From sequence record PV654397.1: a DNA stretch of 64,000 nucleotides; one strand, given 5' to 3'. Each line of letters starts with the position of its first letter. Position 1 is the stretch's first letter. Positions 7,731 through 58,113 of the stretch are shown one piece after another. The translations under genes were made by a program, and so were the position numbers. The notes beneath the pieces are model-generated. The model was not told where the DNA came from, ran no database searches, and was given only the letters and a program-made list of their open reading frames with translations.

Positions 7731-7763
7731 AAAAAAGGGAGACATAAGTCTCCCTTTTCTTTT
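7731..7763. terminator. Bidirectional terminator between convergent genes
   Basis: aaaaaagggagac-ataa-gtctcccttttctttt. Confidence 0.85.
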
Positions 7764-8691
7764 ATACAGCCATTGGTGCTTTGATTGTTGGCATTGGATC
7801 GTAATTAACTAATTTGAAAGAATCCATAGTGAAATCTTCAATATCAGTAATAGTAGGATCTAGCCATAATTCTGGTAATGTACGTGGTTCACGTTGGAGT
7901 TGCTCTTTTACTTGTTCAATATGGTTTTGATAGATATGGCAGTCGCCACCATTCCAAATAAATTCACCAACATCTAACCCTGTAATTTGTGCAATCATAT
8001 GAGTTAGTAGTGAGTAACTACTAATATTAAATGGTACACCAAGGAATAGATCAGCACTACGTTGATGAAGAATACAACTTAGTTTACCCTGTACAACACA
8101 AAACTGCACAAAGCTATGACAGGGTGGCAAAGTCATAGCATCAAGCTCACCAACGTTCCATGCACTTAGAATGTGACGACGACCGTATGGATCAGTATTG
8201 ATACCTTCAATAACTTGTTTTAGCTGGTCAGTTACACGACGCATAATAACACCATGTGAACCAGTATAATCAATAACTTTATACCCTTTATCTTTTAGTT
8301 CTTGAATTTCTTCAGTACTGGAACTGAATTTATAATCTTCCCATTCACGCCATTGTTTACCATAAACTGGGCCAAGCTCACCATCAGAATACCCAAGGCT
8401 TACACCTTGATTAAGGTAGTTGTCTGTCCAAATTGTTTTCTTTTCTACATCACGTGTCCCGTGTAAAATTTCACACAGACGACGCTCATCGTGAGAACCT
8501 TCAATAAACCATAACAATTCTGAAGTCATTGCTTTCCAAGCCAAACGTTTAGTAGTTACTGCTGGGAAACCTTCTTTTAGGTCAAAACGCATTTGTTGTC
8601 CGATTAGCTTGATAGTGCCAACACCAGTACGATCAACGCTTTCGACACCTTGATCCAGAATTCTTTGATATAGTTCTTGTAGTTGTTTCAT
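7762..8691 (-). CDS. thyA: Thymidylate synthase
   Basis: DRTGVGT, LPPCH catalytic Cys, QRSADLFLGVPFN, C-terminal PMAV. Confidence 0.97.
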   Translation of the reverse strand: MKQLQELYQRILDQGVESVDRTGVGTIKLIGQQMRFDLKEGFPAVTTKRLAWKAMTSELLWFIEGSHDERRLCEILHGTRDVEKKTIWTDNYLNQGVSLGYSDGELGPVYGKQWREWEDYKFSSSTEEIQELKDKGYKVIDYTGSHGVIMRRVTDQLKQVIEGINTDPYGRRHILSAWNVGELDAMTLPPCHSFVQFCVVQGKLSCILHQRSADLFLGVPFNISSYSLLTHMIAQITGLDVGEFIWNGGDCHIYQNHIEQVKEQLQREPRTLPELWLDPTITDIEDFTMDSFKLVNYDPMPTIKAPMAV

Positions 8692-9284
8692 TTTACGTCC
8701 TTGAAAAATGTAATAAAGTGTTCCATGTGTTTTTGTGTAGCATTACGTGAACCAATCCCAGTCCAGTTACCGTGTGGTGCTGGTATTGAGAATGTTTCAG
8801 TAAACTCTTTCAGTACTGTATCATAATAAAATACAGAGCGAGTGTTCATATCATAACAATATATTTCTGGATTGTCAACTGAATCCATATACATCTGTAC
8901 GGCCCATGCAGTTCCACCTGAAACTTGCGTAGGTGATGTAATATTTGCAATACAATATACTCTTTTTGTATTAAGTATCTGATAACTATTCCTTGCAAGT
9001 AAGTTATATACATACGAACCAGGCTTAGGAACTTTACGGCGTAAAGAGTAACATGCAATGTTTAATTGTTTTAATATTGAACTATCACAAAGGATATTGG
9101 GTGGAATTTCTAATATAGTATTTTCATCTACGCTGCTTTGGTGACCCTTGAATGAAAAATTTATTACTTCAAATCCATTGTCTTTTGCATAGATAGAAAA
9201 AAGGCGGTCAGCACCTGCTGCCCCGCCACTGAAACATACATTAGATAAACCATTGATTGCTTCATCTAATTCTATTTTATTCAT
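8688..9284 (-). CDS. SLOG/DprA-like nucleotide-binding protein
   Basis: SGGAAGAD, LLARNSYQI, GGTAWAV and GIGSR motifs. Confidence 0.6.
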   Translation of the reverse strand: MNKIELDEAINGLSNVCFSGGAAGADRLFSIYAKDNGFEVINFSFKGHQSSVDENTILEIPPNILCDSSILKQLNIACYSLRRKVPKPGSYVYNLLARNSYQILNTKRVYCIANITSPTQVSGGTAWAVQMYMDSVDNPEIYCYDMNTRSVFYYDTVLKEFTETFSIPAPHGNWTGIGSRNATQKHMEHFITFFKDVK

Positions 9285-9289
9285 TTATA

Positions 9290-9943
9290 TTATTTTGCTT
9301 TACGTTCTGCAAATGCCTGTTTAACTTTCTCAATTGCTTTGGTTTGTGAAATTCCTTCTGGGATTTCAATATAGAAAGTTTTGCTATCAGGTGCTACAGG
9401 TGTTGCTTGAACTTGTGGACGTAGAGATGGTTCTAAGTTGTAAGCACGTTCAAAGTGCTCTTTAGCCAACTGCTCATAACGTTGTGCATCTTTAAGTAGT
9501 TGCTCAACAATGGTAGCTTCTTCAACAGAAGTATCAACTTCTTGTGGCTTGAATGGGTTGTATTCTTTAACTTTACCATCTTCATGTTTTTTAGCATCAT
9601 TATCATTGATTGCGTTGTTTAGAACATCAAGAGAAATCTTACTGTTTCCACCAACATGCATATCAATATCACAAGTACGTGCACGACGCAAATGTTGTAG
9701 ATTATGAAGAACATCTAGCATTTTGCGACCGTCTAGATGACCAATCTTATGCATAACTTCCCACAAATCTACATTCGATTGACCTTGATTCATTACTAAA
9801 TCTGCAACAGATTGAGCATATGCTTCAGGAAGTGAATCGCGATAAACAATGAGACAATGTTCTGGATCATCAGGGAGTGAACGCCATACCACAAATACTC
9901 GTGAACCCGTATTACGTACTACACCAACGTGACGAATAGCCAT
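9290..9943 (-). CDS. Hypothetical protein
   Basis: 217-aa ORF with RBS, tightly packed in operon. Confidence 0.8.
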   Translation of the reverse strand: MAIRHVGVVRNTGSRVFVVWRSLPDDPEHCLIVYRDSLPEAYAQSVADLVMNQGQSNVDLWEVMHKIGHLDGRKMLDVLHNLQHLRRARTCDIDMHVGGNSKISLDVLNNAINDNDAKKHEDGKVKEYNPFKPQEVDTSVEEATIVEQLLKDAQRYEQLAKEHFERAYNLEPSLRPQVQATPVAPDSKTFYIEIPEGISQTKAIEKVKQAFAERKAK

Positions 9944-10273: not shown

Positions 10274-10285
10274 ATTATTTAGTAC

Positions 10286-11695
10286 TTAGCTACGTTGACG
10301 CTTTTTGTCAGCTTCATATTCGTAGTGTACAGTTTCGCCAAATGGTGCTTGTTTGTTAGGATTACTGTGGATAACAAACAGTGTCTTACAGTAATCAGGA
10401 TCACCCCATGACTGCCACGGCTCACCATCTGTAAACATAATAAGCTGTTTAGGCTTATAGTTGTCATGCTTCATATGAACCCATACTGCTTCAAAGTCAG
10501 TACCACCACCACCTTTCACTGGATATTCGAGAATCTTACTCTCTTCACCAGTTTTGTAATCTTTCACAGTATAAACTTCAGTATCGAACGTCATGATACG
10601 GATTTTAAATTGTTTAAACTGCTTAGTGATACCCAGTACTTCACTGATGAAATCACGGAGCATATCTTCAGAGATAGAACCGGATGCATCTAGTGCAATT
10701 GCAATATCAATATCATCATCTGGTTTCATACCAGGGAAGATTGGATTCCCGTAGAATGAACCAGAACTACCAAAACCAGCACCCCATGAACGACGATTAG
10801 GATTTTGATAAGTTGCATCAGACTTCAACCAGCTACGCAGTGTGCGGTGAAGTTTAGAACGCCAGTCGATCTTTGGTTCTTTGAAGTTGTTAATCATACG
10901 TGCGATTTCAGCAGGAGTACCACCTGCACGAGCAGCATTCATCATTGCTGTTTTGAAATCATCCATATAATCACGTTTTTGTTTATCACTTGAACCACCT
11001 TCTTGACCTTCTTGTGGAACGTCATGCTGGTCGATTGTTGTACCTTTGCCTTTACCATCTTTGATATCACCAAAAGTACCGCGTGATTTACCTTCACCCT
11101 CACCACTACCAGCCTGTGGATTTCCTTCACCTTCTCCGTCTTGATCCTGCTTATCTTCTTCTTCGAGAATGTTATAAATCTCTTCAGCAGTCATACCATC
11201 GTACTTTTTATCGTACAGCCATTGGCTTTGGATTTTACCAATTTTATCACGAACAAGAATCTGGTTAATTGCATAGTCAGCAGCACGGTTATAACGCTGC
11301 GGGTCACGCATACCACGACGCAAGAAGTGGTCATATGCACAGTGAAGAATTTCATGACAGATAACTGCAATCAGGTTTTCATCAGTCAAACCTTCTGTCA
11401 TTTCTTTAAGTTGTTCTTCAGTTACTTCAGGATGTTTCTCACGAATTGCTTCTTCGTATGCTGACTTTTTGGATTGGTCCTGAATACCCATGATGAATTC
11501 TACGTTGTAGAATAAATGCTTACCATCTACAGCCAAAGTACGACACCATGTGTTGTTTGCAACTGGACGCAGACGAGAAGCCAGTACACCAAAGAATGGG
11601 AATGTTAGCATTAAAGATGTGCGAGCTAAGATCAGACGATCTTGACATTCTTTCTGGAGAGCCGGAGTAACATCACTGAAACGTTTATCTGACAT
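10286..11695 (-). CDS. DUF2201-type HExxH metallopeptidase-like domain fused to vWA domain
   Basis: TLAVDGKHLFYN, HEILH, acidic Gly-rich linker, DASGS MIDAS motif, GGGGTDF, MFTDG. Confidence 0.88.
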   Translation of the reverse strand: MSDKRFSDVTPALQKECQDRLILARTSLMLTFPFFGVLASRLRPVANNTWCRTLAVDGKHLFYNVEFIMGIQDQSKKSAYEEAIREKHPEVTEEQLKEMTEGLTDENLIAVICHEILHCAYDHFLRRGMRDPQRYNRAADYAINQILVRDKIGKIQSQWLYDKKYDGMTAEEIYNILEEEDKQDQDGEGEGNPQAGSGEGEGKSRGTFGDIKDGKGKGTTIDQHDVPQEGQEGGSSDKQKRDYMDDFKTAMMNAARAGGTPAEIARMINNFKEPKIDWRSKLHRTLRSWLKSDATYQNPNRRSWGAGFGSSGSFYGNPIFPGMKPDDDIDIAIALDASGSISEDMLRDFISEVLGITKQFKQFKIRIMTFDTEVYTVKDYKTGEESKILEYPVKGGGGTDFEAVWVHMKHDNYKPKQLIMFTDGEPWQSWGDPDYCKTLFVIHSNPNKQAPFGETVHYEYEADKKRQRS

Positions 11696-21570: not shown

Positions 21571-21817
21571 TTATTGAAGTATCTCATCAACAGGAAACCA
21601 ATCTATATTCACACAATACAAGTACTTTTTTTCTTGTTTATGATCTGTATAGTTTACACCAACCGACCATTTACCATTTGTGTAAACATTGTATTCTCGA
21701 ATTATACCGACAATGTTCCAAATTTTGTATAAAAGCTTTAAGGATTTTTACGGCATCGTCCTGTGTTGCTACAGTTTTACTTACATCTTGTAATGTTTTT
21801 TTAAGTATTTCTTCCAT
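21571..21817 (-). CDS. Hypothetical protein (~81 aa) needing a +1 shift; not in ORF track
   Basis: AGGA RBS and MEEILKK... frame 0 stops after 48 aa; the +1 frame GIIREYNVYTNGKW...FPVDEILQ runs to 21571. Confidence 0.5.
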
Positions 21818-33941: not shown

Positions 33942-34352
33942 TTAATCGTAGTATGTTCTACCAATGGTGATGTGATATTTGAAATATTTAGATGCTAAAC
34001 CAAGTTCATCACGAATTTGTGCAATGAAATCATCTTCAAACTCTATGATAAAGAATGACCCAGGTTTCTTATTGTCTTTTACTTCTTCGATGAAAGGTTC
34101 GAACTTAATCTTAACTTTCATACCATCGTACTTTTTCCAGTACTCTGGATTTGGTGGCACTTCACCACGAACGATACTGACATGTGCTCCCCATTGTGGG
34201 TCTTTAATATCAATATGTAAGTCAGTTCTGATGAAGTACTGGTAGTAACGAACCAACTGTAATGGAAGTTGCAGTACTAACCAGAAGTCCTTCTTCTTTT
34301 TCATAGTGCCACGATCTGGATCATACACCAGAGTTCCTTCCATTTCAATCAT
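33942..34352 (-). CDS. 2H phosphoesterase family protein
   Basis: Two H-hydrophobic-S/T motifs: AHVSIV and YHITIG. Confidence 0.7.
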   Translation of the reverse strand: MIEMEGTLVYDPDRGTMKKKKDFWLVLQLPLQLVRYYQYFIRTDLHIDIKDPQWGAHVSIVRGEVPPNPEYWKKYDGMKVKIKFEPFIEEVKDNKKPGSFFIIEFEDDFIAQIRDELGLASKYFKYHITIGRTYYD

Positions 34353-34359
34353 ATTTTAC

Positions 34360-34563
34360 CTATAAATTTACATATATGTTTTTATTTTCAATACGAACAT
34401 AAGTTTCCAAAACATCTTTCGGAATTTTATTACTTGTTTTGTACCATGTAGTATTATCTACTAAAACAAAAGTTTCACCTTCAGTTTCACCAAATGTACT
34501 TAGTGCATAAATGAAGTAGTTTGGTGATGCACTACAATATACATCAGCATTAATTTCAATCAT
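34360..34563 (-). CDS. Hypothetical protein
   Basis: 67-aa ORF in operon. Confidence 0.6.
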   Translation of the reverse strand: MIEINADVYCSASPNYFIYALSTFGETEGETFVLVDNTTWYKTSNKIPKDVLETYVRIENKNIYVNL

Positions 34564-34566
34564 ATT

Positions 34567-34698
34567 TTACACCACAATAAAGCTTAATACAACGAGTGTA
34601 ATAAACACACCCACGATGGCAGTCATTTCTGGATTTGCATCATATGTGTATCGGATGCACTTTAGAAAATCTTTACCAAACTTTTTTAGTCCATTCAT
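34567..34698 (-). CDS. 43-aa C-terminally anchored membrane peptide
   Basis: aagga RBS; MNGLKKFG...AIVGVFITLVVLSFIVV. Confidence 0.55.
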   Translation of the reverse strand: MNGLKKFGKDFLKCIRYTYDANPEMTAIVGVFITLVVLSFIVV

Positions 34699-34709
34699 AT
34701 ATTTTCCTT

Positions 34710-35066
34710 TCATTTCTTGTGTAAAGGGTCGGTACTTTCATAATAGATTGTATCATTATTTCGTTCAATAGTAAAACTCTTTTGACACAACTCTTCAGCT
34801 AAACCCTTAGCATAGTTTAATACATCTCGGTTGAGATATATTTCTTCTTTTGGGAAGCGTGGGTACTGAATAATACGAGCACACATTCCACTTTCAAGAC
34901 CACCCGTGTAGATGTATTCACACGGAATCAATTGTACACAAAATCCAAGCTTGAATGCAAACTTTCGTGTGTACTCTCTTGCTGTTTGGATATCACCAGC
35001 AATATGAATATTCCAGTACTGTGTTTCAACTGTACCTTTGTCGATGTATTTCATACTCATCTCCAA
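34710..35066 (-). CDS. Hypothetical protein
   Basis: 118-aa ORF, YIYTGGLESG...YPRFP. Confidence 0.7.
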   Translation of the reverse strand: MEMSMKYIDKGTVETQYWNIHIAGDIQTAREYTRKFAFKLGFCVQLIPCEYIYTGGLESGMCARIIQYPRFPKEEIYLNRDVLNYAKGLAEELCQKSFTIERNNDTIYYESTDPLHKK

Positions 35067-35083
35067 TTATAGCATAAAAAATC

Positions 35084-35479
35084 CTACTTGCCCAAATCTT
35101 CTATAATTCTTTTTATGATATCATTGTTTTCCAGACATAAAGTACTGAAATTTCTACCTGTTTTTTCATTGAGTTCATTAATCTCAAGCATAAGATAACC
35201 ATAAGTGATATCTTGGACCCTACTTCGTTTTACCCTTGAGTACAGTCTGATGGGTACAGATACACGAGTATTCAAAAAGAATTCTGATAAATCATAACGA
35301 TATACCAGGTATTCATTCTTGTAACGTTTACGACTGTACGATTCTAAACACTGTGGGAAACGTCTATCAAACATACTACTTCTTAGTTGAAGTGTGATTG
35401 GATCTAACTTATGCGAGAAATACTTTTTGATTATTTTATTAAATCTTGTTACATGTCGTTTACGCCATCTCATAATCAA
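35084..35479 (-). CDS. Basic hypothetical protein
   Basis: 131-aa ORF, ATGA coupled. Confidence 0.65.
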   Translation of the reverse strand: MIMRWRKRHVTRFNKIIKKYFSHKLDPITLQLRSSMFDRRFPQCLESYSRKRYKNEYLVYRYDLSEFFLNTRVSVPIRLYSRVKRSRVQDITYGYLMLEINELNEKTGRNFSTLCLENNDIIKRIIEDLGK

Positions 35480-35919
35480 ACCTTAAAAAATATAATAGGA
35501 AAGTATTTTGTTTCCGAATCTGAAATACTGTTACAGTAATCTTTCAATTCATCATGGATAACATTCAAATGAATAGTAGGATAGTTCATAGGTTTCTGTA
35601 CTGGGCCAGTGGCATATACGCAATCTGTTCTATCCCAACTTACATATTGGGTTGGGTAATTATCTTTAGTACGTTCTTCAATAATAATATTATATTCTGG
35701 TGTATTGAATATATACATATCACATTGTGAAATGTACTGAACATTAAAATCACCGTCAGTGAGATGGATCATGTTCCCATCGCAATATAAGCATGATGGT
35801 TCAGTGTATCCTAAAATTGAAGATAAAGTTCTGAAGTTTGCTCCTGGACCCAAATATACCAAATTCGTGTGTAAACAAATATCAATGAAACGTTTGAAGA
35901 CTTCAGTTTCGTTATGCAT
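35476..35919 (-). CDS. Hypothetical protein
   Basis: 147-aa ORF with RBS. Confidence 0.7.
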   Translation of the reverse strand: MHNETEVFKRFIDICLHTNLVYLGPGANFRTLSSILGYTEPSCLYCDGNMIHLTDGDFNVQYISQCDMYIFNTPEYNIIIEERTKDNYPTQYVSWDRTDCVYATGPVQKPMNYPTIHLNVIHDELKDYCNSISDSETKYFPIIFFKV

Positions 35920-35962
35920 ATAGATACCTTAAAAAGACCCCACATAGTGAGGTCAAACACTT

Positions 35963-36187
35963 TTAAACGTTATCATCATCCAAAGCTTCACGGTACACAT
36001 AATAAACATGCGTACCTAGAAGAACAATGAGTACAATGAATACTAACCAGAATGGTACAAAATGCAGTACAAGTGCAAATGCCATTACGGTAATAACCAT
36101 CACTACTGAACTAAAAATAAGACTAGTAGCTTTTTTAAATCCAGATAGTACATCATTCAAAACGCGTTTCATAAATGAATCAACCAT
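35963..36187 (-). CDS. Small two-TM membrane protein
   Basis: Two hydrophobic segments. Confidence 0.7.
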   Translation of the reverse strand: MVDSFMKRVLNDVLSGFKKATSLIFSSVVMVITVMAFALVLHFVPFWLVFIVLIVLLGTHVYYVYREALDDDNV

Positions 36188-36764
36188 TTTTATTCCTCAT
36201 ATAATCCATATAGCAAGTTCTGCATAGACTCTTGTATGATTCATCACCACCAATAAAGACTTTATCAGTACTTTCAACTATACGGGCATTCATAGTGGCT
36301 TCTTTGCCACACTTCTGATTCTCACACACGTTCTTAAGTTCATGTATGTCATCAGCTATTTCGAACAGTCTTTGTGAACCTTCAAAAAGATTGGATTCAA
36401 AATCTGTTCGTATTCCATAACAGGAAACATCAACACCATAATTATCTGCTATATCAGCTAAATGGTCAATTTGTTCTCTGTTTAAAAATTGACATTCATC
36501 AACATAGATACTGTTAATGTCAACGTCATTTTTGAGTGTTTCTTTAACTTTAAGAAGAACACTAATGTCATTTTTTGGAATTACTTCAGCCACAGCTTCG
36601 ATGCCAATTCTTGAAGTAATCTTTCCTGTTCCATAACGATCATCAAGTGCACTGGTTAAGTAAATTACCTTCATTCCATTTTTCTTATGGTTATATGCTT
36701 TTTGTAAAAGATGAGTACTTTTACCACTAGACATACTACCATAGTAATATACTAATTTACCCAT
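36180..36764 (-). CDS. tdk: Thymidine kinase
   Basis: GSMSSGKS, ITSRIG, VDECQF, YGIRTDF, Zn cysteines C...CG and LCRTC. Confidence 0.96.
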   Translation of the reverse strand: MGKLVYYYGSMSSGKSTHLLQKAYNHKKNGMKVIYLTSALDDRYGTGKITSRIGIEAVAEVIPKNDISVLLKVKETLKNDVDINSIYVDECQFLNREQIDHLADIADNYGVDVSCYGIRTDFESNLFEGSQRLFEIADDIHELKNVCENQKCGKEATMNARIVESTDKVFIGGDESYKSLCRTCYMDYMRNKNG

Positions 36765-37095
36765 TTTTAATCCTTAAGTACGTGTGCTTACATTTTAATC
36801 TATTACCATAGGATGAAATTGGGATATTGAACATTTCTATTTTACCCTCTTTTAAAAGACGTAAAATATCTGGATCGTTTTTGGTTTGTACACAATGAAG
36901 ACCATTGACTTGAATTTCTAAACCATTCTTCAGAAATTCATAAATCTTCTGTCTACGCTTCCCACCGAAACTTTCATTTCGGATAACATCTCTTAGGTCT
37001 TTATATTCTTGTTTTAATTTCCTGTCAAAAAGTGTTCCATCTTTCTTTCTGATTTCTTCAATACACTTATATTGAGTTTGTCCTCTAAGAGCCAT
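36757..37095 (-). CDS. Hypothetical protein
   Basis: 112-aa basic ORF. Confidence 0.7.
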   Translation of the reverse strand: MALRGQTQYKCIEEIRKKDGTLFDRKLKQEYKDLRDVIRNESFGGKRRQKIYEFLKNGLEIQVNGLHCVQTKNDPDILRLLKEGKIEMFNIPISSYGNRLKCKHTYLRIKNG

Positions 37096-37564
37096 ATTTG
37101 ACCTCGTTGGGATATTTCTTCATTAACTCATGTAAACGTTGAATTTCCTGATTTTTCTTATGTTCTTCATCATACTTCTTAGAAAGATTCTTTCTTGTAT
37201 TTGTTTCTAATAATCTAAAATTAGTACAGAATCTATCATTTTTAGCAACGTTCTTACGTAACGCATCAAAAACAGTACTGAAATAGTTATCCAATGGAAA
37301 AGAAGTATCAGTGTAATTATAAAAATCCATTACATTTGTCATGTTCACATGTTCAATTACCGCACCATTGTGCGTTACAATAAACATTATATCACCATAA
37401 TTACAATTTGCATCAGTACGGTACAGATATAAATGATCACGTAAATAATCTTTTAATTTATGTTCAATACCACTTTGTTCAGTACTTTGAAATACCAAAA
37501 CTTCACCATAGATTGTATTACCTTCATAATCATTTGGTTCGCGGATAATTGTAAGGTTATACAT
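37085..37564 (-). CDS. Hypothetical protein
   Basis: 159-aa ORF with ggag RBS. Confidence 0.7.
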   Translation of the reverse strand: MYNLTIIREPNDYEGNTIYGEVLVFQSTEQSGIEHKLKDYLRDHLYLYRTDANCNYGDIMFIVTHNGAVIEHVNMTNVMDFYNYTDTSFPLDNYFSTVFDALRKNVAKNDRFCTNFRLLETNTRKNLSKKYDEEHKKNQEIQRLHELMKKYPNEVKYGS

Positions 37565-37572
37565 ATAACTCC

Positions 37573-37863
37573 TTATACCGGAGATACGGTACTCAGCATT
37601 AGTAGAGCAGTGTTTTCATCAATTTCATGTTGATTGTCGCACACTAGATTTTCCAATAGGTCTGGATTGTAATAATAATGTTCATAATCTGTATCATTTG
37701 GAATATGGTGATAGGTGAATACAATGTCAAATACATCATCATCATTTTCACTTTTGAAACGCTTTAATTCTTCTACACTTTCAACAAAACCATACTCTTC
37801 AAAAGCAGTAGTACCATCAGTAAGTTTCATCCATGCACTTGCGACAATTTTCATAAATTTCAA
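37573..37863 (-). CDS. Hypothetical protein
   Basis: 96-aa ORF. Confidence 0.7.
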   Translation of the reverse strand: MKFMKIVASAWMKLTDGTTAFEEYGFVESVEELKRFKSENDDDVFDIVFTYHHIPNDTDYEHYYYNPDLLENLVCDNQHEIDENTALLMLSTVSPV

Positions 37864-37867
37864 ATCC

Positions 37868-38455
37868 TTATTCTTTTGTAATGTTTAGTTTAGAAACGAA
37901 ATGGTTTTTTGCTTCTTCAAATGTCATTGAAGTATATACTGGGTTCCAATTATCGTCAAGATCTGTAAGTACTTTAACTTCCATTACATCTTCAGGTGTG
38001 TAGAATTGCCATGTGTTATGATCTGGTTCATAATTAGGGTCTAGTGTGAAAACTGTTCCATTCTGACCATAAACTTGTCCATCCTCTAATAGCTCACGAA
38101 ATAAGTCTTCCCCAGTTGTTGGGTCTTCGTATGCATTATAAAAAGGAAAAACAACATTCTCAACATCAGTTCGGGTAGTACCATCGTCTTCATCATATTC
38201 AACTAAACGGTCCTGATGAAATACTAGGTCAATAGCACCAATGCGAGGTTTATTATGTGGAGTTTTGATTTCTTGCTGGGAATTGTAATCCATACGTTCA
38301 GTACTGATGAATACACCACTTGGTGTGATTTCAATACCAGACACATTTTCTGGTGAATAGTACGCTTCACACATATCATCAATATACATGTGCTCATGAT
38401 ACACTTCCATTTCAGGGTTCTGCATCAACAGTGCTGCTAGGTCTTTTGCTTTCAA
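37868..38455 (-). CDS. Acidic hypothetical protein
   Basis: 195-aa ORF, ATGA coupled. Confidence 0.75.
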   Translation of the reverse strand: MKAKDLAALLMQNPEMEVYHEHMYIDDMCEAYYSPENVSGIEITPSGVFISTERMDYNSQQEIKTPHNKPRIGAIDLVFHQDRLVEYDEDDGTTRTDVENVVFPFYNAYEDPTTGEDLFRELLEDGQVYGQNGTVFTLDPNYEPDHNTWQFYTPEDVMEVKVLTDLDDNWNPVYTSMTFEEAKNHFVSKLNITKE

Positions 38456-38844
38456 TCTTCAATCTCCATAGAGTCATCACTTTCGTAATCATCACTAGTG
38501 TACTTAGTTTTTACCTCAATACCATTCTCATGTAGGTATGTGATAAAACCATTACCATGAACGAATTGATTATAATATGTATTTTCTTCTACATGTGAGT
38601 CATAATCATCTTCGTAATATGTGGGCATTGTAACATCATGACCTGCACTTTGCAAGTACTGGAACAATTCTTTCAGTACTACTTCGATATCACCTTCTTC
38701 TGTGCCATAACAATATGCAGGTTCACCGTGAGTGAATTTGAATCCTTTACAGGAAACTGTATAAATATCACTCATGTTCATACCACAATCATCACATTCA
38801 TGTATAGAACAATGCTGGTGGAATTTAATCTTTTTGATTTGCAT
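38452..38844 (-). CDS. Hypothetical protein with possible metal-binding Cys/His
   Basis: H.HC..HEC.DCG motif. Confidence 0.7.
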   Translation of the reverse strand: MQIKKIKFHQHCSIHECDDCGMNMSDIYTVSCKGFKFTHGEPAYCYGTEEGDIEVVLKELFQYLQSAGHDVTMPTYYEDDYDSHVEENTYYNQFVHGNGFITYLHENGIEVKTKYTSDDYESDDSMEIED

Positions 38845-39178
38845 TTAGAAAATCCTGTAAAGATGTAGTAGACATTGGACTATCAGCACCATCATACCAC
38901 AGTGATGTATATGGCTGAACTGAACTAATATCAATACAGAATCCTTCACGCTCACATTTTCGAGCGAATTCTTCAGTAGTTAGTTTGTTACCAAAAGAAA
39001 TCTCAAATTCATAACTAGACATATCAATATCAGTACTGTAAATCAATGTACCATCATATGTAATATGGAGTTTAGAATCTGCGTCAAAAAGACGATCTGA
39101 AATAGCTTCATAATCATCTTCAGGAACTGCTTCAATAAGACGGGCCATTAGTCCAGATGTTACGCGGTAATCACTCAT
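38825..39178 (-). CDS. Hypothetical protein
   Basis: Start reassigned to MSDYRV (ggag RBS). Confidence 0.7.
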   Translation of the reverse strand: MSDYRVTSGLMARLIEAVPEDDYEAISDRLFDADSKLHITYDGTLIYSTDIDMSSYEFEISFGNKLTTEEFARKCEREGFCIDISSVQPYTSLWYDGADSPMSTTSLQDFLNANQKD

Positions 39179-39191
39179 ATATATTCTCCAA

Positions 39192-39219
39192 AAGAAAAGG
39201 AGAGTCACAATGACTCTCC
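39192..39219 (-). terminator. Intrinsic terminator
   Basis: ggagagtca-caa-tgactctcc with a minus-strand U tract. Confidence 0.75.
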
Positions 39220-39226
39220 ATATATT

Positions 39227-39667
39227 TTATTGTAAAACTTTGAGTTTGTAAAGCATTCCTTCACAAAAACTCATAATGTCTTCTAGCGTGTTAGTACTGC
39301 CATAGTCTTCAGCCTCTTCTAGCATAGCATGAATGGCTTTACATTGACTAACATATTCTTCAAGAATTGGTACACAATCCTCGATAGGGGTAAAACGATA
39401 ACTGTTACCAGTACCTACCTGCAATGCCCCGCGAGTGTTCATAATACCCTCTACAAATGCATCAACGTACTCAGGTAACTCTTTGTATAGTTCATCCAAT
39501 TGTAGGTGCTTAGTGTAGAAATGGCTCTGTAAATGCCAGTTGTGAGCAGCAGCACTTAAAAATAAACTATTCTCAATAAATGTAAGTAGTACTTCATCAT
39601 AAGAACTATCTTCTTCAGTATCTCCGATAAAGTCCATTACATGTCGTAAATCATTAATATTTTCCAT
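39227..39667 (-). CDS. Ferritin/Dps-like four-helix protein (DUF5856-like)
   Basis: AHNWHLQS.FY.KH..LDELY.ELPE.VD.FVE; YKLK.LQ C-terminus. Confidence 0.7.
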   Translation of the reverse strand: MENINDLRHVMDFIGDTEEDSSYDEVLLTFIENSLFLSAAAHNWHLQSHFYTKHLQLDELYKELPEYVDAFVEGIMNTRGALQVGTGNSYRFTPIEDCVPILEEYVSQCKAIHAMLEEAEDYGSTNTLEDIMSFCEGMLYKLKVLQ

Positions 39668-39697
39668 AAATCTCTCCTTAGAGTTATTCTATGGTAT

Positions 39698-40126
39698 TTA
39701 GTTAATAATAAAGGTAACTTCAGGATTCATTTCTGAAACTGCATTTCTCTTACTTCTATTCCATAGTACTCTATTGTTATATAATGAAGAATCACAAATT
39801 ATAAGTAAGCAATTCCTTAATCTACTTACAGTACTTTGATTACTTAAATCAGTTTCTGTAACAAAAAATACATTATCAGGAACTTCTACAGGAATTGATT
39901 TATCAAAGAAGAAAACTACAATAGGTCTGTTTGTATGAACTAAATTAATAAAGTCTAAAATACTGTTATAAAATTCAGTTCCTTTGTTTAAACTTAATGG
40001 ATCTTTGATTCTCTTCAAATAGGTCTGAACCAAATTATGATCGCTTTTGATTTGATACTCAAAATATTCTTTGAATAACATTTGTGTTAATTCAGATGTA
40101 TTGGATATTTTCGTTGTGTTACTCAT
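39698..40126 (-). CDS. Hypothetical protein
   Basis: 142-aa ORF. Confidence 0.7.
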   Translation of the reverse strand: MSNTTKISNTSELTQMLFKEYFEYQIKSDHNLVQTYLKRIKDPLSLNKGTEFYNSILDFINLVHTNRPIVVFFFDKSIPVEVPDNVFFVTETDLSNQSTVSRLRNCLLIICDSSLYNNRVLWNRSKRNAVSEMNPEVTFIIN

Positions 40127-40264
40127 TCACTTCGTTCTCTCGTAACTCAAGAAGTCACTACGTTTACTTCGTAAACTAGTTCCTTCTGAAAATGATAATG
40201 TACTTTAAAAGCTTGACGGGATTTGTTGAGGACTATTTCATCCCCCCGCAGGGGAATGAAGGTA

Positions 40265-40781
40265 ATAAAAAAGAGACAATTAAGTCTCTCTTGACGATGA
40301 TGGCATCGGATATTATCGAATTGCGAATTTCTCAAATTTTGGACGGATCTTTCCTGTACCAAAATTTAGAGAGCGAAAGCGGGTTGCTCGGTTTCTCTCT
40401 ATCGCAGTCATATGCAACGGTCGCTGGTCTTTTCATCAACAGCACTCAGTACTAAACTCTATTCGATCAAAGTAGTACCTGTTCTCAAATTTTGGACGCA
40501 ACTTTCTTGTAAAATCGCGTCCACAATCCTTGAACTCCCTTAGCAAATTCGTAAGGTGCGAACCTTATACATCTATCTAGGAACTCTCTGTGTGCTTATT
40601 GGAGTTCTTTATACAGCCGTGTCGCCGTGATTCGTGGTCTTATCTCGTGTTTGTTTGATTGCCAGTACTCTAACAGGTTTCTTTTGCTGTTCGCTACAAC
40701 GGTAAAGCTCATCTATCCTTTACATTTTCAAGAGAAGTAGGTTCTCATTATCCATTTTTCAATGTCCGTTGTCATTTTACA
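40265..40781 (-). ncRNA. Candidate large structured non-coding RNA (or structured DNA element)
   Basis: No convincing CDS; promoter at 40788-40815; terminator-like stem at 40264-40292; at least 7 hairpins; about 42% GC versus about 28% in the left flank (hand-counted samples). Confidence 0.5.
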
Positions 40782-58080: not shown

Positions 58081-58113
58081 TTAAAAAGTACTGCCACTAT
58101 AACAGTACTGATA

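Follow-up and report, generated by a model that had tools for sequence, protein, structure and literature searches.

The palindrome AGTACT is over-represented in RaK2-like jumbo phages of enteric bacteria and occupies fixed positions in their σ70-like early promoters

AGTACT sites in the analyzed window

The analyzed window is a stretch of 64,000 nucleotides from sequence record PV654397.1, which is 100% identical to the genome of Escherichia phage WPEC5. In the interval 34235-40669, which comprises small minus-strand genes coding for a thymidine kinase, a Dps-like DUF5856 protein and hypothetical proteins, 19 copies of the palindrome AGTACT were found. Over the whole window, 157 sites are dispersed between positions 108 and 63989 with a mean spacing of 410 bp. 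Their distribution is Poisson-like, as the gaps fit an exponential distribution (KS p=0.65) with a CV of 0.93 and the variance/mean of 2-kb bins is 0.77. In the unique genome of WPEC5, 984 copies were counted against 111 expected.

Regarding the reading frame, 82 of the 157 sites are read as AGT-ACT, 46 as xxA-GTA-CTx and 25 as xAG-TAC-Txx, and only four are intergenic. One of the intergenic sites (10281-10286, minus strand) is located directly after the stop codon of the HNH/DUF2201 gene and before a terminator-like hairpin. Another one (21621-21626, minus strand) lies upstream of a tail-tube gene in the context AAAAAA-AGTACT-TGTATT, which resembles the -35-register class of the early promoters described below, so that a promoter at this position is putative. 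Furthermore, a terminator-like hairpin was identified at 58087-58109 on the minus strand (cAGTACTgttatagtggcAGTACTttttt). Its two AGTACT copies, 17 bp apart from start to start, pair with each other in the predicted transcript and are followed by UUUUU, just upstream of the ribosome-binding site and ATG of the next gene. The minimum-free-energy structure shows a 10-bp stem, although the z-score of the whole fragment is only -0.7. Six such pairs followed by a T-run occur in the genome.

Two further sites (40448-40453 and 40664-40669) are located in a G+C-richer stretch at 40.4-40.7 kb, which is annotated only as tiny ORFs. No Rfam family matched this stretch, and the site at 40448 is in no promoter register. 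The initial annotation had called both sites non-coding, whereas they lie in tiny annotated ORFs of doubtful reality.

The observation made in the initial annotation, a strong excess of AGTACT in this interval, is correct, including the count of 19 and all nine positions listed, and it is stronger than stated there. One value has to be corrected, since the G+C content of the window is 36.3% and not about 33%.

The enrichment is not reproduced by coding constraints

Dinucleotide shuffles of the window gave 21.1±4.5 sites (maximum 37), and AGTACT is the most over-represented of all hexamers. The initial annotation had named two outcomes that would speak against a selected mark, namely reproduction of the count by codon- and dipeptide-preserving shuffles and an equal enrichment of other NGTACN words. 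Neither was observed. Synonymous-codon shuffles, which preserve each protein and therefore every dipeptide as well as the codon usage of each gene, gave 46.9±5.7 and, in a second run, 47.5±5.5 sites for the window (z about 19-20), and 6.6±2.1 sites for the interval (maximum 13 in 200 shuffles). Other AT-rich palindromes gave |z|<2.3 in the same test. Of the other NGTACN palindromes, TGTACA occurs 32 times (36 expected), and CGTACG and GGTACC are absent.

In addition, all three frames are used to a similar degree. Of the Ser-Thr, x-Val-Leu and Q/K/E-Tyr-T.. opportunities, 55%, 52% and 47% are realized, against 16%, 10% and 7% expected. Ser-Thr itself is over-used 1.39-fold, so that the word is kept even at the cost of amino acid choices. 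Outside the early region, the density is 2.42 per kb inside ORFs and 2.45 per kb outside.

The flanks of the site are dyad-symmetric (C-AGTACT-G). C is found at -1 in 50% and G at +1 in 46% of the sites, and the two flanks are statistically independent. The sequence CAGTACTG makes up 37 of the 157 sites. Only position -1/+1 adds information, and it does so equally in coding DNA and in the early region. As the word and its flank preference are palindromic, an orientation cannot be encoded.

A by-product without a function of its own, arising from codon or dipeptide usage, context-dependent mutation or repair (VSP-like), spill-over from palindrome avoidance or self-complementarity at the RNA level, is therefore very unlikely and already largely refuted. 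AGT, ACT, GTA and TAC are common codons here and two nearby copies can form terminator stems, but all frames and intergenic DNA are equally affected and sites occur in untranscribed promoter spacers. One-mismatch neighbors are not depleted but mildly enriched, unlike in a conversion process, and the avoided neighbors GGTACC and CGTACG had expected counts of only about 7 each.

Distribution among related phages

AGTACT is the top hexamer with a 7.6-10.6-fold enrichment in WPEC5, PBECO4, RaK2, GAP32 and Erwinia phage pEa_SNUABM_12. The trait is shared by four genera on Escherichia, Klebsiella, Cronobacter and Erwinia. It is absent from the more distant relatives PA5oct (0.2x), RAS14 (0.7x) and XacN1 (0 sites), as well as from T4 (0.6x) and rV5 (1.0x). 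At 84.5% identity, 63% of the sites are retained, against 42% of all hexamers. At about 60% protein identity only 19-26% are retained, yet orthologues carry equal numbers (57 vs. 64 and 54 vs. 59). Most individual sites have thus turned over between genera while the density stayed constant, which indicates continuing selection. A 50-kb sample of E. coli K-12 contains 3 sites.

Fixed registers in early promoters

The early region is about 21-fold enriched. There, the motif occupies two fixed registers of near-consensus σ70-like promoters (AGTAC-TTGACA-N9-10-AGTACT-G-TATAAT), a placement that is a new finding of this analysis. Of 33 strong σ70-like promoters, 23 carry the site, at offsets -27 and -7 from TATAAT, whereas sister promoters with the same backbone lack it. 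The same two registers were found in RaK2 with varying spacer bases. Between WPEC5 and 121Q, 8 of 8 and 12 of 14 register sites are retained, while the mid-spacer identity falls to 67-86%. However, some of the fixed registers could reflect common descent of duplicated promoter units rather than independent constraint.

The two-site promoter pattern gave only 7 hits in 596 Gbp of prokaryotic genomes, none of them in Enterobacterales, with an estimated chance expectation of about 13. The architecture is therefore not a host design. Nevertheless, a host protein of Enterobacterales could read the site, for example the nucleoid-occlusion factor SlmA, whose 12-bp site GTGAGTACTCAC has an AGTACT core (PMC3020112). 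All enriched phages infect Enterobacterales, the non-enriched relatives infect Pseudomonas, Stenotrophomonas or Xanthomonas, and early promoters must work before any phage protein is made. The SlmA site is a palindrome GT-R-AG-Y-R-CT-Y-AC, in which G1, T2, A4 and G5 are required (PMC3020112), and no match to it was found in the 359,664 bp of the genome. A GTR flank is present at only 32 (20+12) of 1,968 half-sites, and G at -1 is disfavored at 6-9%. Since T4 and rV5 infect the same host without enrichment, and sister early promoters, inferred to be functional, have the same backbone without the site, a host reader seems unlikely. It is not formally excluded, as the clade boundary coincides with the host order.

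A dispersed recombination, repair or replication signal is likewise unlikely, although neither supported nor excluded by the data. Examples would be a Chi-like regulator of a nuclease-helicase, a programmed nick site or a priming site that works on either strand because it is palindromic. The Poisson-like dispersion and the constant density despite turnover, as for Chi, are in line with this, and the phages carry T4-type recombination and replication genes. The density is highest in and next to the 21.7-kb terminal repeat, but the high-density zone extends beyond the repeat to 27 kb and tracks the early transcription units. Known signals of this kind are asymmetric and oriented, genuine Chi (GCTGGTGG) is separately enriched (37 vs. 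about 2.6), and the promoter registers conserved across genera are not explained.

Methyltransferases and candidate reader proteins

A 6-bp palindrome is the typical target of type II methyltransferases, and AGTACT is the ScaI site. AGTACT could be the target of a phage-directed modification (methylation or another adduct), in which case the mark rather than a bound protein would matter. It could protect the DNA or tune early promoters according to the methylation state of incoming versus replicated DNA. Sites overlapping promoter elements recall Dam-regulated promoters, and RaK2 DNA was reported to be refractory to many enzymes (PMC3622015). WPEC5 encodes a C5 (PF00145) and a Dam-family (PF05869) methyltransferase, whose specificities cannot be read from sequence. 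Members of PF05869 are usually GATC-specific. The m5C of RaK2 was mapped to a CpG context (PMC3622015), whereas AGTACT has no CpG. Homologues of the C5 enzyme at about 50% identity occur in rV5-like phages, and rV5, which carries one, shows no enrichment. No data on ScaI digestion or PacBio/Nanopore signals at the site were found in the literature searched.

A search of 142 mid-sized ORFs gave no restriction endonuclease match, no further methyltransferase match and no clear DNA-binding domain among the 25 families listed per library. The proteins of the early region have almost no Pfam hits, and the HTH protein of GAP32 is not conserved in WPEC5. Furthermore, 22 other palindromic hexamers and GCGC are completely absent from the genome. 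This near-total avoidance argues that the DNA is largely unmodified and may also explain much of the reported resistance to digestion, which is a practical caution for reports of restriction resistance in these phages. Modification by itself gives no reason to accumulate sites. This reading finds no support here and remains unlikely.

Interpretation

The interpretation in the initial annotation, a selected genome-wide mark serving as a binding site for a phage protein, a modification target or a recombination/packaging signal, is partly supported: the mark is selected at the DNA level and is not a coding by-product, and of the three options a phage protein gains support from the conserved promoter positions.

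The best explanation, to which a probability of roughly 45% is assigned, is that AGTACT, weakly extended to C-AGTACT-G, is a cis-acting recognition site on double-stranded DNA, kept by selection at about one per 340-400 bp throughout the genomes of RaK2-like jumbo phages of Enterobacterales. It would most likely be read by a two-fold symmetric factor encoded by the phage itself, a homodimeric DNA-binding protein made early or delivered with the virion, for which no candidate was found among the proteins searched. In the early region the site lies at -39..-34, overlapping the -35 box, and at -19..-14, in the spacer and abutting the -10 box. A bound dimer there would compete with RNA polymerase, so that the site would act as an operator that times or shuts off early transcription. 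Elsewhere, the roughly 1,000 copies make phage DNA about 50 times richer in the site than the sampled E. coli DNA, and the same factor could load preferentially on the phage chromosome, whether to coat, organize, protect or distinguish it. The analysis itself establishes the enrichment, its frame-independent and symmetric nature at the DNA level, its restriction to one clade, the turnover of sites at constant density and the conserved promoter registers, whereas it is inferred that the reader is a protein, that the phage encodes it, that it binds the site and represses transcription, and what the genome-wide copies are for. Fewer than 10% of the sites are in promoters, and the role of the other 90% is pure inference. 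Moreover, a bare palindrome of 6-8 bp is short for a classical repressor operator and more typical of restriction-modification enzymes.

A more far-reaching version, less likely than not but not excluded, starts from the fact that RaK2-like phages have no known base hypermodification. The Sharanji paper reports no homologue of the phage-nucleus shell protein chmA and suggests that no nucleus forms. These phages may instead carry a sequence-encoded self mark, read by a dedicated and possibly co-injected protein. It would load on phage DNA about 50 times more densely than on host DNA, switch off early promoters as it accumulates and organize or shield the chromosome, e.g., against translocating nucleases, or let phage enzymes tell phage from host DNA. 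This would be a chromatin-like alternative to DNA modification and a new way for large unmodified phages without a nucleus-like compartment to handle their chromosome.

Phage genomes are known for avoiding short palindromes. This genome does so to an extreme, yet it keeps one palindrome at nine times its expected frequency, a trait found in four genera on four host genera. The pattern implies an unrecognized DNA-reading function that is central to the biology of a whole group of jumbo phages, several of which are being proposed for therapy. The motif also gives a direct experimental handle, as it can serve as oligonucleotide bait, coincides with the site of a commercial enzyme and occurs in natural promoter pairs with and without it.

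Comparison with known systems

The ScaI-type restriction-modification target is the identical palindrome, with the symmetry and length typical of such enzymes. However, restriction targets are normally depleted in phages, and no ScaI-like nuclease or matching methyltransferase was detected. The SlmA-binding sequence is also dispersed on a chromosome and read by a dimeric protein of enteric bacteria, but its required flanks are missing or disfavored here. Chi with RecBCD and the DNA uptake sequences (DUS/USS) are short words kept far above chance density, whose individual copies turn over and which serve as a self signal for a DNA-processing machine. They are asymmetric and orientation-dependent, occur in cellular genomes and have known readers.

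The histone-like proteins p6 of phi29 and TF1 of SPO1 are abundant phage proteins that bind all along the phage chromosome, prefer phage over host DNA and turn down early promoters. p6 recognizes bendability and supercoiling and TF1 hydroxymethyluracil DNA, and neither uses a discrete, over-represented sequence word.

Finally, in the stoperators of cluster A mycobacteriophages one phage-encoded reader, the L5 gp71-type repressor, recognizes both an operator at the early promoter and many further copies of the same short site spread over the phage genome (PMC9283540, PMC6550527). Stoperators are 13 bp long, asymmetric, intergenic and co-oriented with transcription, number about 25-35 per genome, and are bound by a monomeric repressor in temperate phages. 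In the phages described here, in which no repressor homologue is annotated and the reader is inferred only, the site is a palindrome of 6-8 bp with about 1,000 copies in lytic jumbo phages, and more than 90% of the copies lie inside ORFs.

Over-representation of AGTACT in the window

The 64-kb window is 100% identical to positions 229954-293953 of Escherichia phage WPEC5 (PV654397.1), a 381-kb jumbo myovirus of the PBECO4/121Q (Asteriusvirus) type. It belongs to the RaK2-like group, which also contains Klebsiella phage RaK2, Cronobacter phage GAP32 and Erwinia phage pEa_SNUABM_12. The window is 95.7% coding, mostly on the minus strand, and encodes tail and neck proteins, enzymes of nucleotide metabolism and many small hypothetical proteins. 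Thymidylate synthase (7762-9943) and thymidine kinase (36180-37564) are each annotated as two pieces with an ORF between them, which encodes a SLOG/DprA-like protein and a hypothetical protein, respectively. Several relatives align to the thymidine kinase region in two pieces, which suggests an insertion polymorphism.

The over-representation of AGTACT described in the initial annotation was confirmed, and all of its coordinates were correct. Exactly 19 sites are located in 34235-40669 and 157 in the window, whereas dinucleotide shuffles give 21.1±4.5 with a maximum of 37. AGTACT is the most over-represented of all 4,096 hexamers, and the next two, GTACTG and CAGTAC, are its extensions. The G+C content of 36.3% is slightly above the previous estimate of about 33%.

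Two conditions under which the enrichment would have been dismissed had been named beforehand, and neither applies. First, synonymous codons were permuted within each gene, which keeps each protein, and hence all dipeptides, as well as the codon usage per gene. This gives 46.9±5.7 sites for the window (z about 19-20) and 6.6±2.1 for the interval 34235-40669 (maximum 13 in 200 shuffles). This null is conservative, because the codon usage it preserves is itself inflated by the motif. Under the same shuffle the other AT-rich palindromes are ordinary (|z|<2.3). Second, the other NGTACN palindromes are not enriched, with TGTACA found 32 times (36 expected) and both CGTACG and GGTACC found 0 times.

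Selection at the level of DNA

The sites lie in all three reading frames, with 82 as AGT-ACT, 46 as xxA-GTA-CTx and 25 as xAG-TAC-Txx, and 4 are intergenic. In each frame, about half of the places where the protein sequence would allow the word actually carry it, namely 55% of Ser-Thr, 52% of x-Val-Leu and 47% of Q/K/E-Tyr-T.., against 16%, 10% and 7% expected from codon usage. A codon, dipeptide or codon-order artifact was rejected on the basis of the shuffles and of these opportunity counts, and a by-product without a function of its own is considered very unlikely. The dipeptide Ser-Thr is over-used 1.39-fold while Thr-Ser is at 1.00, therefore the pressure also reaches the protein sequence. 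Several sites that differ between WPEC5 and PBECO4 involve amino acid changes, e.g., AGAACT versus AGTACT. Outside the early region, the density is the same inside and outside ORFs (2.42 and 2.45 per kb).

The flanks of the word are dyad-symmetric. C at -1 and G at +1 are each found at about 45-50%, whereas G at -1 and C at +1 are each found at 6-9%. The two flanks are statistically independent, and a search for an extended motif showed no information beyond them. One-mismatch neighbors are not depleted but mildly enriched, most strongly at the outer positions, which fits selection for binding and does not fit a mutation-conversion process. A VSP-like conversion was rejected for this reason.

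Spacing in the window is Poisson-like, cannot be told apart from random and is slightly over-even, so that periodic or clustered arrays were rejected. Excess pair distances of 20-24 bp and 11 bp occur only through the promoter architecture described below. The E. coli Chi sequence GCTGGTGG is over-represented in the WPEC5 genome as well, with 12 copies on the plus strand and 25 on the minus strand against 1.3 expected each, and CTGGTG is also a top hexamer in the window. A role of the AGTACT sites as a recombination or replication signal is regarded as unlikely.

In the unique WPEC5 genome (359,664 bp), AGTACT occurs 984 times against 111 expected. In contrast, 22 of the 64 palindromic hexamers are absent from it, although up to 51 copies of each are expected, and GCGC occurs 0 times against 219 expected. 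In the window alone, 26 of the 64 are absent. The genome is therefore under very strong restriction-site avoidance and makes one large exception. PBECO4, RaK2, GAP32 and the Erwinia phage share this pattern, and the restriction resistance reported for RaK2 DNA may largely reflect missing sites.

Phylogenetic distribution and turnover of sites

AGTACT is the top hexamer at 7.6-10.6 times expectation in WPEC5, PBECO4, RaK2, GAP32 and pEa_SNUABM_12, and all five also lack GCGC. The RaK2 stretch tested first was a replication-gene region not homologous to the window. More distant relatives do not show the enrichment (PA5oct 0.2x, Stenotrophomonas phage RAS14 0.7x, Xanthomonas phage XacN1 0 sites), and neither do the unrelated coliphages T4 (0.6x) and rV5 (1.0x). 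A 50-kb sample of E. coli K-12 has 3 sites, thus phage DNA is roughly 50 times denser in the word than that host sample.

Between WPEC5 and PBECO4 (84.5% identity), 63% of sites are retained against 42% of all hexamers. Of the 114 aligned sites of the window 42 are absent from PBECO4, and of the 100 aligned sites of PBECO4 28 are absent from the window. In orthologous genes at about 60% protein identity, only 19-26% of sites are located at the same codon position, against 11.5% for any hexamer, yet the orthologs carry the same numbers (57 vs 64, and 54 vs 59). The density is therefore maintained by continuing selection with weak constraint on each individual site, and is not simply inherited. 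The interpretation proposed in the initial annotation was partly supported, and its core, that the word is a selected genome-wide mark, holds.

AGTACT in predicted early promoters

Along the whole genome every 10-kb bin is enriched, but the first 27 kb carry 6-7 sites per kb, about 21 times expectation. This stretch comprises the direct terminal repeat of 21,662 bp, which is exact (1-21662 and 359665-381326), and the adjacent small-ORF region. The repeat copy at the far end shows the same density. In this stretch, the density is 5.0 per kb inside ORFs and 9.9 per kb between them. An array of about 15 paralogous RCC1-like ("chromosome condensation regulator") genes lies next to the early region, at 26.7-45 kb in WPEC5 and at 22.3-30 kb in the 121Q sequence.

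Judged from sequence alone, the early region has dozens of near-consensus σ70 promoters with 16-bp spacers, each in front of a small ORF. The intergenic AGTACT copies are located in such promoters on the coding (minus) strand, in two registers. The first one overlaps the upstream edge of the -35 box (AAA-AGTACT-TGCAA, 27 nt before TATAAT). The second one lies in the spacer and abuts the -10 box (AGTACT-G-TATAAT). Of 33 strong promoter-like sequences in this stretch 23 carry at least one site, and several carry both, 20 bp apart centre to centre, whereas in the rest of the genome 10 of 141 promoter-like hits carry one. Sister promoters with the same backbone have AATACT or AAACGCG at these positions instead, therefore the word is probably not needed for promoter activity itself. 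Resemblances to LexA, TrpR and the extended -10 were considered, but the spacing or register does not fit.

RaK2, a different genus on a different host, has 220 sites in 40 kb of its early region (22 times expectation). It uses the same two registers, AGTAC-TTGACA-N9-10-AGTACT-G-TATAAT, while the spacer bases between them differ from promoter to promoter. The last 50 kb of GAP32 were analyzed for its early promoters, but the region held none. Between WPEC5 and 121Q (89% identity), 8 of 8 and 12 of 14 register sites are retained, while mid-spacer positions fall to 67-86% identity. Positions -39..-34 and -19..-14 are where a bound protein would clash with RNA polymerase, which is the classical arrangement of an operator.

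The two-site design is essentially absent from 596 Gbp of prokaryotic genomes, with 7 hits, none of them enterobacterial, against our own estimate of about 13 expected by chance. This argues against a host regulon. Six related environmental viral contigs of a quite different kind (L023-L028, from IMG/VR) carry the identical design AGTAC-TTGACA-N10-AGTACT-G-TATAAT once each, where it appears to drive an apparently non-coding transcript. This lineage has about 41% G+C and contains GCGC, the word is only 2-3.5-fold enriched overall, and the one contig tested gave no DNA match in the phage collection. The contigs share no regulator-like protein with WPEC5, as only lysozyme, MazG and GroES-like proteins were found in common.

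Two further places had been singled out in the initial annotation. The pair at 58087-58109 forms a terminator-like hairpin in the minus-strand transcript, the stem of which is made of the two self-complementary copies, followed by UUUUU. Six such pairs exist in the genome, and this is a secondary use of the word. The G+C-richer stretch at 40.4-40.7 kb (40380-40780), which is annotated only as three tiny ORFs, carries two sites in no recognizable promoter register. An Rfam search on 40.0-41.0 kb returned no match. A strong σ70-like promoter (TGGACA-16-TATAAT) lies just upstream at 40815-40788.

Search for a factor reading the word

No reader could be identified by the searches performed here. 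The two annotated methyltransferases are a C5 enzyme and a Dam-family enzyme. The C5 methyltransferase was judged an unlikely cause, since m5C of RaK2 was mapped to a CpG context (PMC3622015) and homologs at about 50% identity occur in rV5-like phages, whereas rV5 shows no enrichment. A screen of 142 mid-sized ORFs against PADLOC and Pfam showed no restriction nuclease and no further methyltransferase among the 25 best families listed per library, so that weak hits could be hidden. On this evidence, AGTACT as the target of a DNA modification seems unlikely, although it remains the least improbable of the alternatives.

Early-region proteins are almost all without Pfam hits, and Pfam annotation around the RaK2 early genes gave no candidate. 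A 166-aa early protein at 8853-9353 of L037 (relative of RaK2, early region) has a weak Pfam hit to the H-NS N-terminal oligomerisation domain and could be a nucleoid-protein mimic or a DNA binder. The HTH protein of GAP32 gave no candidate either, and ten hand-picked enzymes gave nothing relevant. The host nucleoid-occlusion factor SlmA binds GTGAGTACTCAC (PMC3020112), but the phage has no SBS-like 12-mers and disfavors the required flanks, so that SlmA was rejected. A host factor in general is considered slightly less likely than a recombination or replication signal.

Proposed mechanism and comparison with known systems

The most likely mechanism, which is held only tentatively (probability about 0.45), is that AGTACT is the site of a two-fold symmetric DNA reader, probably phage-encoded. 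At early promoters it would act as an operator for shut-off or timing, and its roughly 1,000 other copies would let the same factor load preferentially on phage DNA. Whereas the enrichment, its independence of frame and codon usage, its symmetric flanks, its phylogenetic distribution, the turnover of sites at constant density and the conserved promoter registers were shown by the sequence analysis, the reader itself, its phage origin, its binding and effect on transcription and the purpose of the genome-wide copies are inferred.

In the literature searched, no paper connects AGTACT with these phages, and none reports their promoter architecture in these terms. The signal is of high interest, as it is extreme, clade-wide and immediately testable. 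A genome-wide selected recognition word combined with an operator is in itself known, and the closest precedents are the stoperators of cluster A mycobacteriophages, where one repressor has many genome-wide sites (PMC9283540). Further precedents are phi29 p6 and SPO1 TF1, proteins which coat the genome and repress early promoters. Chi and DNA uptake sequences are the precedent for a word kept at high density as a "self" signal. The case described here differs from these systems in that the word is a palindromic hexamer, lies mostly inside genes and reaches about 50% saturation of the available positions, and in that the phages are lytic jumbo phages which otherwise purge palindromes.
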